A DNA stretch of 64,000 nt. Source: Oopsacas minuta (Eukaryota; Animalia; Porifera). This document shows, piece after piece, positions 11,110-16,016 of this stretch. A model generated the notes under the pieces. The model was not told where the DNA came from. It made no database searches and worked only from the letters and a program-made list of their open reading frames with translations. Within the stretch, counting starts at the first letter, position 1. Every line of letters starts with the position of its first letter. Where the stretch lies: positions 372,001 through 436,000 of the forward strand of contig JAKMXF010000210.1 of the NCBI GenBank assembly GCA_024704765.1, written 5' to 3'. The position numbers were made by a program, and so were the translations under genes.

Positions 11110-11764
11110 ATGACCAACACAAATGACCTATTATACGAGGTGATAATAATGGGAGAGGGAGGCGTTGGTAAGAGCTCTTTAACTCACAGATTTATGGGAT
11201 ACGAGTTCCTTGAAACTTATGATCCTACGATAGAGGGAACATTCCGTGCAGAGTCAGAAGTTGACGGTGTAACTGTAGAAGTGGAAATCACTGATACAGC
11301 TGGTCAGGATTCATTCAGAGATATCATCAGCACGTACTACAGTCGAAGGGGTGCTGGTTACATGCTTGTGTTCTCTCTTACAGCTAGAGATTCATTCTTT
11401 GCTCTACAGGTAATGAATAGTATTTAATATTTATCGATATTATTGATATTATGGTTATATGCTATAGAATAGAATATATGAGGAGTTAATGGATACGAAG
11501 AGATCTCTCTCTGGTCAACAACATGAACGTGTACCCATTGTGCTGATAGGTAACAAGTCTGATTTACCTTCTAATAGAGAGGTACAATTGACAGAGGGTC
11601 AAGCTCAAGGGAGAGAATGGAGTTGTAACTACTTTGAAACCTCAGCGAAATTCAATGAGAATGTACGAGAATCATTTGTGACTCTAATTCGTGAGATGAA
11701 TATAGCTCGTCAATCAGAGAAGAAAACTCTTTCGAAAGAGAAAGGTTGTTGCACGCTGTTGTAA
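11110..11764 (+). CDS. Ras-family small GTPase 2 (exons 11110-11409, 11468-11764), tail GCCTLL
   Basis: G1 GEGGVGKS, YDPTIEG, DTAGQD, NKSD, ETSAK. The intron is at the same codon position as in GTPase 1. Confidence 0.92.
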
Positions 11765-11766
11765 GA

Positions 11767-11800
11767 GGTTGTTTATTTGTTTGTTTGTTTGTTTGTTTAT
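11767..11800 (+). repeat. (GTTT)n microsatellite in the 3' UTR of Ras-like gene 2
   Basis: gtttatttgtttgtttgtttgtttgtttatt. Confidence 0.8.
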
Positions 11801-12133
11801 TAACAGCTTTCATATTTTATATATTTTAGGTATTATTTTTGAACTTTTTATAAATATTTTACCGACATTTCCTCATAATAGTACAGATGATTCTGGTACT
11901 AAGTACCCCTTGGGTGTAGCAATATTAAAATATACAGGAATATATGAGAACCGTAATCCAGAGGATGGTGCCTATTTCCAGCATCCATTGTATTATGTAA
12001 TTATCTTGTTTTGTTAACATAGCTTTTATATTCCACAAGATTCTATTCATAATACAATAATACACTATTCTTCTATTCAATCTGGCCTCTACTCTAAAAC
12101 ATTCACCATTACCACCATATCTACTAACAATTC

Positions 12134-12764
12134 ATGGCCCCAGAATTTGCAGGAACTGCAAAATAACTCTTTACAAATATCGGTGCAGGCACCCAGCAAC
12201 TCGGTTCCCACCGAAGAAGTACCCCTCGTCCCTCTCTCTAAATCCGGTGCACACGCTTCTCCACTTATCGGACCCTCTTTGCTGTCCCAAACCTTCTCCG
12301 ATCTCACAAATAACATATCCTCCTGTGAAATTATCAGATTCATACCTCCAGATCCTAAACATGCATGTGACCCTCCAGTCAAGCCCCTCCTCCTGGACCC
12401 CTCAGAAATACAACACCTCTCTTCTTCTGAGACACCCGGTACAGAAGGGACTGTTTTCCTCTTGACAGAGAAGAGAGCATTCCTTTTCTTCTCCTGCCAA
12501 AAGGATCTCCTCTCTCTTCGAAAAGAGAACCTGGTCGCCCTTTGTGACTTTATTGAGATACGACTTGAAGTCACAGAGCTATTCACTCTCCTCCCTCGCT
12601 GCAGTATTTCCTTACCATCTCCATCAGGTCACGAGGATTTACTCCAGTCAATGCGAACTCTTAGATTGCTGGGATTTGATTTGATAGCTCCTAACTCTAA
12701 GGCGTGGCCTAGCGCCTATCTTTCTCCTGAAACCTATTCCTGTCTTGTTTATATGTTAGAATAA
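12134..12764 (+). CDS. OAZ: Ornithine decarboxylase antizyme (start and decoding mode unresolved)
   Basis: KENLVALCDFIEIRLEVTELFTLLPR..MRTLRLLGFDLIAP..CLVYMLE* aligns by eye with the OAZ1 core [47 protein letters not shown]. No in-frame ATG precedes the core. Confidence 0.82.
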
Positions 12765-13024
12765 CACTTCACATTTATTGCGATGTACAAATCAGCTTTT
12801 GATACGCAATTACTCATTGACCAAGTCAGTTATGAACGGTTGTATATTATTAATGCATGCTACACTTTTTCGGCTGCTATTTATGTTCTGAGTATTTGCT
12901 AATGAGTATGCTAATATTATCTTTAGATTACGGCTTCTTTGCTAAATTTATACTGATTTATTGCTAGTTTTTCAATAATCAATCATTTTATTGGATAGTT
13001 TCAACTGATTACATTTGTGGAGGA

Positions 13025-13780
13025 ATGGGCGAAGATTTGAAAATCCATGACCAGAAAGTGATCGAGTTCCGTGCACAGTATCTTGTCGCTGCAGAAGAAA
13101 CATTACGTACAGAATTCCCATTAAAGGTTGTAGAATTGACAGAGATGCTTAGCTCAGAACTTTTCAGTGAAGCTACCCTTAATCGTGTCAAACTAGGAAC
13201 AACCTTCTCTCCTACTTGTTGTCAAGAAGATGGGAAAGATGGACATTGCGTAGAGGCTCGTGTGCGGACTAAGAAAAGAAAAGTAGAGGACAGTGATAAC
13301 TCAAATGAATCAGATCCTCCTACCGATAACTGTGGTGTAATACAAACTAATAGCGAGCTGCAACGCATATCATCTATTGTAAAGCCTCACATCCTATCTC
13401 TTATACTTCATCTTAACACGCTAAAACTGTGGATAGAACTACTCATCCCTCGTATTGAAGACGGTAATAATTTCGGTGTCAGTGTACAAGAAGAAGCATT
13501 GAGTGAGATATCACGCTCAGAGACAGAAGCTTCCAGCTTACTTGACAGTCTATCTCGTTATTATCTGAGTAGAGGCAAGATTGCTTCTAAGTGCATCAAA
13601 TACCCAGGGCTTCAAGACTATAGAATAGCTCTAGGAGAGATGGATGAGAAGAAGTTCTACTCCCTGAAGATAGTTGTATCAGAACTACGTAACCTATACA
13701 CTACTATTTACGATATATTACTCAAGAACCTGGAGAAAATAAAAACTCCTAGAAACAGTAATACTAGCTCTATGTACTAA
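13025..13780 (+). CDS. PSME3: Proteasome activator PA28 (gamma-like), intronless
   Basis: Activation loop LLIPRIEDGNNFGVSVQEE, KCIKYPGLQDYR, C-terminal KIKTPRNSNTSSMY, basic NLS-like RTKKRK in the linker. Confidence 0.9.
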   Translation: MGEDLKIHDQKVIEFRAQYLVAAEETLRTEFPLKVVELTEMLSSELFSEATLNRVKLGTTFSPTCCQEDGKDGHCVEARVRTKKRKVEDSDNSNESDPPTDNCGVIQTNSELQRISSIVKPHILSLILHLNTLKLWIELLIPRIEDGNNFGVSVQEEALSEISRSETEASSLLDSLSRYYLSRGKIASKCIKYPGLQDYRIALGEMDEKKFYSLKIVVSELRNLYTTIYDILLKNLEKIKTPRNSNTSSMY

Positions 13781-14078
13781 CTACTTCATCATCATTAGTT
13801 ATTTCAGGGGATCGGCTTAGCCACACATAAGCCGAGATCTGTCTGGCTAATTCGCTTAGTTCAATGACACACAGTTTCTTGTAGGGTTGCAAATGTAACA
13901 ACACTCCTCACATTCTAATTATATTGATTATTGTTACTTTATAGAGTAGAGCAATTATTCTTGTAACTGATTAATTATGTACACTATTTTATCCAGGAGA
14001 TCGTTCTGTAACTACTTTATTATTTAAATATATATATTTCCTTATTGGTGCTATTGAATAATACGTGTTTATGGTAGT

Positions 14079-16016
14079 ATGAGTATATCTGGTGCAGAAG
14101 TATTAGCGTTATCTCTCCATGCTCAAGGCATAGAGTTCATATTCGGTATTGTTGGTATACCTGTTATAGAAGTAGCTACAGCATGTCAACAACAACAAAT
14201 ACATTTCATTTCTATGAGGAATGAACAAGCTGCTTCCTATGCTGCATCAGCTGTTGGTTATCTTACAGACAGCCCTGGGGTGTGTTTGTGTGTGTCAGGA
14301 CCTGGACTAGTGCATTCTCTTGCTGGAATGGCTAATGCTCAAGCTAATGGATGGCCTCTTATAGTTGTAGGTGGTGCAGCTAATACGACGCAAGAAGGAT
14401 GCGGTGCATTCCAAGAGTCTCCACAGGTAACCATAGAATTATACAAATCATTGGCTAGACATAGTTTAATCTTTTCAGGTACAATGGGCAGCTCCATACT
14501 GTAAACTATCTATCCGCCCTTCCTCTATACACACTATCCCCTCATGTATAGAGAGAGCTGTACGTATATCTACATATGGTAGGCCTGGTGTTGTATACAT
14601 AGATCTACCAGGTGATATGATTAACACAGAGTTATCACAAGCTCCGAATATCCCTGTCCACTGTCCCCCTCCTCCTCTATCTACTGCTCCATCCTCTCTT
14701 ATACTCGATTGCTATAAAGAAATATATTCATCTCATAATCCACTAGTAGTAATTGGTATGTTAGCTTAATCTGTTAATTAATACTCATTTATATTTTCTA
14801 TATGTAGGGAAAGGATGTGTTCTTGCCAGAGCAAGCTCAGAGGTTAGAGAATTCATAAATCAAACTCAACTACCATTTCTACCTACACCAATGGGTAAGG
14901 GGGTACTAGAGGACACACACCCTTGCTGTGTCGGTGCTGCTCGCTCTCTCGCTCTCTCATCCTGTGATACCATCGTCTTGTTAGGAGCACGACTAAACTG
15001 GCAGTTGCATTTTGGTCTGCCACCTCGTTTCAACTCCAAGGTACTTATATACTCATTACTTCATATCTATATTAATGAATATTTGTATAGGTAAGAGTAA
15101 TTCAAATTGATATTTGTCCAGAGGAATTACACAGTAATGTACCAGCTACAGTAGCTATTAATGGACATATACGTGGTGTAGTTCCTCAGCTGACTGAGGT
15201 ATTCAGAAAGAATAATTTCGAATATTCTAAGAACTCTAAATGGTGGAGAGATCTCATGGTTAAATGTGAGAAAAACCGCGTTATCAGTGAAGAGCTTTTA
15301 AGCGATCGTTCTATTCCGATGAATTTCTATTGCGCTATGGATACATTATCAAAGTATCTACCAAAAGATAGTATGATAGTTAGCGAGGGAGCTAGCACCA
15401 TGGATATTGGTCGCACCATGTTACCAACACACTATCCTGGACATAGACTAGATGCAGGAACCTACGGGACCATGGGTGTAGGTCTTGGGTTTGCTATAGC
15501 TATTGCTAGTATCAAAAAATTCGGTGGAAACAAATATGATTATTTGAATATTGGTCCAGTAAGTATTTGATTGTTTTTAACATTATTTATGTTTATTTGT
15601 TGTTTATCTTATAGGTTGTTTGTGTTGAGGGAGACAGTGCATTCGGGTTCTCAGGGATGGAGATAGACACGGCAGCTAGGTATCAGTTGCCTATTGTTTG
15701 TCTTATCTTTAATAATTCAGGGATTTCATTTGGAGTTAATATGGATACCTGGGAGCAATGTATTGCTAACGGACCACCAAGCCTTACAATACCACCAGTT
15801 GCTCTCAAACCAGGTACGAGGTATGATATGATAGCGCCTGCTTTTGGCTGTGAAGGGTTCAATGTGAGAACCCCAGAGGATTTAGAGCATGTCCTCAATC
15901 ACTGTTTCTCAGATTACCCAGCTAAGAAACGCCCTGTGTTAGTTAATATTGAGATTAACCCTCAGTCTCAGAGGAAACCACAGGAGCATTTTTGGCTTAC
16001 AAGATCTAAAATATAG
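14079..16016 (+). CDS. HACL1: 2-hydroxyacyl-CoA lyase 1 (TPP enzyme). Exons 14079-14426, 14479-14755, 14808-15040, 15091-15558, 15615-16016
   Basis: [35 protein letters not shown] motif [19 protein letters not shown]1-like C-terminus SKI. Confidence 0.93.

Follow-up and report, generated by a model that had tools for sequence, protein, structure and literature searches.

The hexactinellid sponge Oopsacas minuta possesses a single-copy, expressed and intronless gene for ODC antizyme, and the best explanation of its organization is that the main reading frame is entered by a +1 frameshift at AAA-UAA, after a first open reading frame (ORF1) of only ten codons. We put the probability of this reading, which is based on a comparison of four related genomes and on one RNA-like sequencing run, at roughly 0.7. 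Antizyme is a brake on polyamine synthesis, and antizyme frameshifting is the textbook case of cellular regulatory recoding, with a shift site (UCC-UGA) that is unusually conserved. The sponge would appear to use a variant of this mechanism, namely one that combines a Euplotes-like AAA-UAR site with a minimal ORF1 and a block of conserved sequence in the leader. The gene lies within a stretch of 64,000 nucleotides that was analysed as a whole (hereafter: the window), and all coordinates refer to the first letter of that stretch (Table 1).

Table 1. Features of the antizyme locus, in window coordinates
Feature	Position	Strand	Remarks
Probable spliced-leader trans-splice acceptor TAG	12020..12022	+	putative; exon from 12023; alternative AAG 12037-12039
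Conserved 5' leader block	12078..12119	+	invariant CAATCTGGCCTCTAYTC then CATTCACMATT; 15-56 nt before ORF1 AUG
ORF1, MAPEFAGTAK	12134..12166	+	10 sense codons plus TAA; AUG in weak context, T at -3
Proposed +1 shift site AAA-UAA-C	12161..12167	+	U 12164 skipped, next codon AAC 12165-12167
ORF2, antizyme body	12165..12764	+	199 codons plus TAA; similar to 3 syntenic orthologues
Candidate 3' stem-loop TCGGTG / CACCGA	12180..12214	+	begins 13 nt after ORF1 stop
TTC-TCC-GAT (F-S-D), ordinary codons	12294..12302	+	in predicted helix (model residues 39-50), start of folded domain
Pfam ODC_AZ domain match	12465..12749	+	residues 101-195 of ORF2 piece; 27.4 bits

Results

Identity and genomic context of the gene

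An earlier note on this DNA, made from the letters alone, had assigned the gene to the ODC antizyme family, and both sequence profile and predicted structure bear this out. The Pfam ODC_AZ profile (PF02100) scores 26.8-27.4 bits on the translated antizyme frame against a cut-off of 24.2, and it is matched by all four orthologous proteins (best E-value 2e-7). When the entire assembly (61,460,524 bases in 365 contigs) was scanned in six frames, the same profile returned one locus, with 28.2 bits; this sole PF02100 locus is the antizyme gene discussed here, and a paralogue with a canonical shift site was not found in the scan. A profile search of the PDB sequences gave only a marginal match (1zo0, E 1.1), and a search by fold was therefore needed. 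For this an AlphaFold (AF2) model was built on the four orthologues, with a confidence (pLDDT) of 65 overall and of 70-86 in the C-terminal domain. The best fold match of the model is human AZ1 as bound to ODC (4zgy_B: Z 10.7, 111 residues, rmsd 3.0), followed by human AZ1 in a second structure (5bwa_B, Z 10.4); the next unrelated chain scores Z 7.3 and is, like most of the chains that rank below it, a GNAT acetyltransferase. The gene is thus an ODC antizyme with the GNAT-like alpha/beta fold.

Word-based protein searches recovered three relatives on long ENA contigs, with identities of about 68%, 63% and 56% (range 56-69%). The order of the genes, i.e. Ras-like GTPase, antizyme, PA28 proteasome activator and TPP-dependent enzyme, is the same in all four glass-sponge assemblies, and because of this shared gene order we take the three relatives to be orthologues from other glass sponges. 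The comparison therefore involves four syntenic loci, that is L010, L011 and L012 together with the window (11110-14700), all from glass sponges, so that conservation between them counts few independent events. In the three orthologues the antizyme was missed or truncated by prokaryote-style gene calls, and an antizyme gene of this kind is one that gene predictors can be expected to miss or truncate. Two details of the neighbourhood may be recorded in passing: antizyme, the protein that brings ODC to the proteasome, is encoded next to the gene for the proteasome activator PA28 at a distance of ~260 nt, which may be coincidence, and a (TTTG)n microsatellite (11770-11803) directly follows the stop of the Ras-like gene. 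The comparison with the reads passed over 11764-11807 as repetitive.

An antizyme frame without a start codon

As the earlier note had described, the antizyme frame, whose codons start at multiples of three, runs without a stop from 12018 to 12761, where it is closed by TAA at 12762-12764, and it lacks a usable ATG before the conserved core; its sole ATG codon is found near 12651, late in the domain. The claim that the gene has no UCC-UGA site likewise stands; the proposed shift site reads AAA-UAA-C. At three of the loci (the window, L011 and L012) a stop codon bounds the frame on its upstream side and no ATG comes after that stop, and for this reason an in-frame AUG further upstream is not a general solution. 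The RNA-like contigs that cover ORF2 contain neither an intron nor an indel. Between the assembly and three of the sequencing runs (X2-X4) there are single-base differences at 12521, 12780 and 12879, presumably alleles within one sample, of which the first (A>G) turns CGA into CGG and leaves the antizyme protein unaltered.

A short ORF1 and a switch in the frame under selection

The ORF1 frame runs one base behind the antizyme frame, and its stop at 12164-12166 is followed by C. The earlier note had pointed out that the ATG at 12134 opens a frame, MAPEFAGTAK-TAA-C, from which exactly a +1 shift enters the antizyme, and this too is what the sequence reads. At all four loci the ATG is invariant, lies inside the string TTCATG, has a T at -3 and is followed by exactly ten sense codons counting the ATG itself. 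The four peptides (MAPEFAGTAK, MPQKITGTAK, MAPRTTETAK and MAPHFPATAK) differ in codons 2-7, and all four frames end in ACT-GCN-AAA followed by a stop that is TAA in two species and TAG in the other two. The general layout, a short ORF1 with an AUG and a partly overlapping ORF2 in the +1 frame without one, is hence found at every locus, with an invariant AAA-UAR at the proposed shift site. The 131-173 nt upstream of the ORF1 ATG are free of further ATGs, whatever the frame, in each of the four species; the chance expectation of such a stretch is ~0.07-0.12 per species.

Up to and including the stop, GCA-to-GCC and TAA-to-TAG are synonymous for ORF1 and would replace Gln by Pro and Asn by Ser if read in the antizyme frame; directly 3' of the stop, it is the antizyme frame in which the changes (TCT/TCC and TTA/CTA/CTG) are silent. 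Because the silent changes swap frames at this point, the frame under selection switches at AAA/UAR. In addition, the structural alignment places the AAA/AAC junction near residue 61 of human AZ1, which is close to the canonical junction at 68/69. The first of three decoding models in the earlier note, AUG 12134 with a shift at AAA-UAA-C, is therefore the one that gains from the comparison: start codon, length, last codons and stop are kept in four out of four loci, silent changes swap frames where that model puts the shift, and the RNA-like contigs contain neither an intron nor an indel.

Several other routes from one frame to the other were considered. Transcriptional slippage is unlikely: the run of A at the site counts only four (three in L012), and the RNA contigs contain no indel. 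A second AAA-TAA-C in the ORF1 frame (12308-12314), just after the F-S-D site, is not conserved in the orthologues and was taken as chance. The triplet CAG at 12150-12152, five bases before ACTGC, is also invariant in the four species; it may belong to the context of the shift site or else serve as an alternative splice acceptor.

Reads, transcripts and the 5' end

Four public sequencing runs from one sample, which is probably the source of the assembly, cover the gene. Three of these are DNA-like, with flat depth and with gap-free contigs that match the window colinearly over 11808-14700. The remaining run, X4, is RNA-like: its depth is uneven and its contigs contain GT..AG joints at 11407/11466 and 14423/14476. 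In none of the contigs of the four runs were inserted or deleted letters found across the antizyme gene. X4, which does show the neighbouring introns, has no splice joint across 12012-12766, and because of this the antizyme gene can be called intronless; for the same reason a cis-intron or an upstream exon that supplies an AUG was rejected. RNA contigs that encode the window's own ORFs are not on record.

The depth of X4 in the bin 12012-12162 is 3018, against 7441 in the next bin (41%), which is too high for an mRNA that begins after 12152 and disfavours such a start. The same depth speaks against a leader acceptor at the invariant CAG, with which AUG 12134 would be lost from the message. The mature RNA thus seems to extend ~60 nt or more 5' of 12162 and to include the ATG at 12134. 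These depths were derived from contigs and are coarse, and as the antizyme leader junction is absent among the loose ends listed, the 5' end is one that we infer. The depth in every run is inflated by a dispersed repeat at 11928-11979, a unit of about 50-60 nt of which the genome contains at least 47 copies (157 candidates), sometimes in tandem with a period of 57 nt (C133:81062-81341).

The X4 contigs carry a foreign tag, ending AAAAACTTAC, before 11090, 12966 and 14076; the tag, AAAAACTTAC(AG), occurs there at acceptors 2-57 nt 5' of three start codons. A genome search for the tag followed by GT uncovered a family of spliced-leader (SL) RNA genes (leader tag ...AAAAACTTACAG). The exon end ...CTTCATAAAAAACTTACAG, directly followed by GTAAGTTGG, is common to at least ten of these genes (among them loci L002-L009, position 1500 in each). 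The leader exon has no ATG in the eight SL RNA genes inspected, and a start codon supplied by the leader was thereby ruled out. In all four species a T-rich tract followed by TAG/CT is located about 108-115 nt 5' of the ORF1 ATG, with the nearest upstream ATGs just 5' of it, and the window has no AG in 12040-12141. This is the probable acceptor of the antizyme message, and the ATG at 12134 is the first ATG that follows it.

Conserved elements that flank the proposed shift site

In the alignments of the four species (A1 and A5) the leader block begins with 17 invariant bases and is conserved above the level of the adjacent coding sequence. Counted by codon position in the antizyme frame, its changes number 11/3/10, which is a weak three-base periodicity, and it contains a single indel, of 3 nt, in L012; given both features the block could be translated. 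We nevertheless read it as an RNA element, which may act from the 5' side as a stimulator of frameshifting or of initiation. It falls in the untranslated leader because ORF1 is so short. In known antizymes, conserved 5' elements have been traced as far as 95 nt upstream of the ORF1 stop (PMC1874602). A search of metagenome contigs with the 17-nt block, aimed at more orthologues, gave only chance matches among the matches listed.

The hairpin that the earlier note had offered as an option fares modestly well: TCGGTG (12180-12185) is complementary to CACCGA (12209-12214), and the two arms can pair in all four species. Pairing is possible in 92.5% of the cells, compared to 20-45% with a slid partner. 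Compensatory changes amount to 2-3 pairs, all of which come from L011, and are not significant on four sequences (64/500 shuffles). The minimum-energy fold includes the hairpin in two of the four species. Counted from the first base of the P-site codon, it begins at a distance of ~20 nt, farther than is typical of such stimulators. We treat the leader block and the stem-loop as candidate frameshift stimulators.

The TTC-TCC-GAT site

The earlier note had drawn attention to TTC-TCC-GAT at 12294-12302, 154 codons from the stop and shortly after Gly-Pro, and all of this is present in the sequence as described; the contigs of the four runs show no indel there either. Together with the three orthologous loci, which keep the frame open, this makes an assembly error at 12297-12302 unlikely. 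The proposal attached to the site, that an ancestral UCC-UGA-U has been fused in frame, is not supported by the comparison. In the four species the site reads TTC-TCC-GAT, TTC-TCT-CAT, TTC-TCA-TGT and TTC-TCT-CAA, i.e. Phe-Ser is kept as protein, the third base of the Ser codon drifts and the Asp occurs only in this species, and Gly-Pro is Thr-Pro or Ser-Pro in the orthologues. Since this is ordinary coding variation, the site is unlikely to be a shift site or a recent relic of one.

The structural alignment agrees. Model residues 44-199 pair with residues 105-219 of human AZ1, and F44 falls on residue 105. With the canonical human junction at Ser68/Asp69, the sponge site would correspond to a point some 37 residues past it. 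The sponge domain spans 155 residues, compared to 115 in human, which amounts to ~40 residues of insertions, and it is because of these inserted residues that the distance to the stop (154 codons) matches the usual value of about 160.

Alternative explanations

The main rival to a shift at AAA-UAA is initiation at the CUG at 12156-12158, which is also what is left of a third decoding model in the earlier note: of a non-AUG start or a start in an upstream exon, only the former is retained, in the form of this conserved codon, and the AUG exon is not supported by the RNA, which shows no joint. In this scenario ribosomes would leak past the AUG at 12134 and begin ORF2 at the CUG in the antizyme frame, with ORF1 as an overlapping regulatory uORF that is possibly polyamine-responsive. 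We consider it unlikely, even though it can draw on several of the observations: the CTG is invariant at all four loci, three of which have a purine at its position -3, the T at -3 of the ORF1 AUG leads one to expect leaky scanning in every species, and the downstream hairpin could help a weak start. In L012, however, the base at -3 is a C. Kozak's work is said to show that a hairpin at roughly 14 nt favours weak starts; that of the sponge gene begins 21 nt past the CUG, a placement that better suits a ribosome whose P site is occupied by AAA. More importantly, a start at the CUG has no need for a fixed position of the ORF1 stop (kept through TAA-to-TAG), for a conserved Ala (kept through GCA-to-GCC) or for a frame of exactly ten codons. 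Precedent can be cited on both sides: non-AUG starts are known in genes of the polyamine pathway (e.g. the CUG proposed for antizyme 3), but +1 frameshifting is used by nearly all known antizymes (PMC1874602).

Much less probable still is a frameshift-free antizyme with a fused ancestral UCC-UGA at 12297-12302, whose translation would begin in an upstream exon or at a non-AUG codon 5' of the leader block, so that the block would be coding. The antizyme frame is indeed open from 12018, and the block encodes a conserved QSGLYS..FTI with few second-position changes and the one indel of 3 nt, yet the nucleotides of the supposed relic are not conserved and align with AZ1 residue 105, and no conserved start of any kind precedes the block (the candidates being ATT, ATT, CTG-TCA or none). 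The distances from acceptor to block (111, 108, 106 and 113 nt) moreover imply indels that do not preserve the frame, no cis-splice joint was seen in the RNA although neighbouring introns were seen at lower depth, and the leader, which lacks an ATG, has an in-frame TAA in the register of the window. A gene in decay, which would have lost its start codon for that reason, is an even more remote prospect: the main frame without an ATG and the weak Pfam score fit such a history, but ORF2 has been kept open in four species with mostly silent third-position change, it belongs to the sole antizyme locus in the genome, its RNA-like contig depth is similar to that of the neighbouring genes, and synteny is kept. 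The second decoding model of the earlier note, in which AUG 11944 and an intron at 11997-12039 give an ORF1 that ends in UCA-UAA-U at 12047-12053, has next to no chance and was discarded. It is favoured by the frame arithmetic of this one sequence only; X4 shows no joint from 11997 to 12039 where neighbouring introns are visible, the AUG is located inside the dispersed repeat, and the region is unalignable between species.

Discussion

Relation to known antizymes and shifty stops

A frameshift at AAA-UAR would set the sponge gene apart from the antizymes described so far. In a 2007 survey of close to 300 antizymes, which contained no Porifera, the stop was UGA in about 97% of the cases and seven P-site codons were encountered, AAA not being among them (PMC1874602). 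The shift-site codons typical of the family, a typical and not a defining feature, are thus absent from the sponge, with AAA-UAA-C in the window and AAA-UAG in two of the orthologues. A search of the literature on antizyme in combination with sponges or with AAA-UAA found no relevant report.

With a canonical metazoan antizyme such as mammalian OAZ1 (UCC-UGA), the gene shares the C-terminal ODC_AZ domain and its fold, an ORF2 that occupies the +1 frame and lacks an AUG, a proposed shift at the last sense codon of ORF1, a comparable spacing between the junction and the folded domain (junction near AZ1 residue 61 versus 68/69), and conserved sequence 5' of the site together with potential structure 3' of it. 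It differs from OAZ1 in the P-site codon (AAA instead of UCC), in the stop (UAA/UAG instead of UGA) and in the absence of UGG two codons before the site. The ORF1 of human AZ1 has 68 codons; that of the sponge has ten, so the conserved 5' block lies in the untranslated leader and not in ORF1. On the 3' side, where the stem-loop is separated from the stop by 13 nt, no pseudoknot was seen.

The identical hexamer, AAA followed by UAA or UAG with a +1 shift at an internal stop, is the classical motif of the shifty stops in Euplotes (PMC4759687). There it operates in thousands of genes, with UGA reassigned and without a need for flanking signals, whereas here a single regulatory gene is considered and its flanks are conserved. 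The genetic code of the sponge looks standard, because TGA still closes 7 of the 24 long open frames in the window. A lineage-specific shift codon, with a non-UGA stop in some relatives, is also found in OAZ1 of Saccharomyces (GCG-UGA-C, and also GCG-UAG; PMC1874602), although the P-site codon is a different one and the yeast ORF1 is long, with regulation via the nascent antizyme peptide.

Another possible parallel is the upstream conserved coding region of AZIN1/ODC, where a short frame with a weak start codon likewise lies upstream on a polyamine-pathway mRNA; that system represses the downstream main ORF and does not involve a frameshift. The work of Ivanov et al. (2018) is said to describe polyamine-dependent queuing of ribosomes at such a weak start for AZIN1 and ODC. 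By analogy, the 30 nt of the sponge ORF1, about one ribosome footprint, would put a queued 40S subunit on the AUG.

Proposed mechanism and its implications

The following route to the protein may be proposed. The mature mRNA probably starts at the spliced-leader acceptor near 12022 and would have an AUG-free leader, so that scanning ribosomes would reach AUG 12134 as the first one, in weak context, and translate the ten codons of ORF1. Once AAA (12161-12163) occupies the P site and UAA the A site, some of the ribosomes would shift by +1, because either the peptidyl-tRNA(Lys) re-pairs from AAA to AAU or U 12164 is occluded, and these ribosomes would go on to read AAC and then the 199-codon antizyme body. 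The shift is presumably stimulated by polyamines, in analogy to all studied antizymes, and the leader block on the 5' side and the stem-loop past the stop are the candidates for additional stimulation.

A more far-reaching version, to which we give little credence for the time being, is that of a compact polyamine sensor in which initiation is coupled to recoding. The conserved weak AUG and an ORF1 the size of about one ribosome footprint would then make a ribosome that is paused at AAA-UAR park the next 40S subunit on the start codon, and the leader block would act from the 5' UTR on the paused or queued ribosomes. Should this be the case, a frameshift stimulator in a 5' UTR and a Euplotes-type shifty stop would have been recruited independently in an animal with the standard code.

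For the evolution of the family, the glass-sponge lineage would have replaced the P-site codon and the stop and would have cut ORF1 to ten codons, and would nevertheless appear to have kept the regulatory circuit. If the frameshift at AAA-UAR holds true, the gene would show how little of an ORF1 antizyme frameshifting requires, it would offer a natural test of 5' stimulators that act from untranslated RNA, and it would represent an independent use, by an animal and under normal termination, of the AAA-UAR motif of Euplotes.
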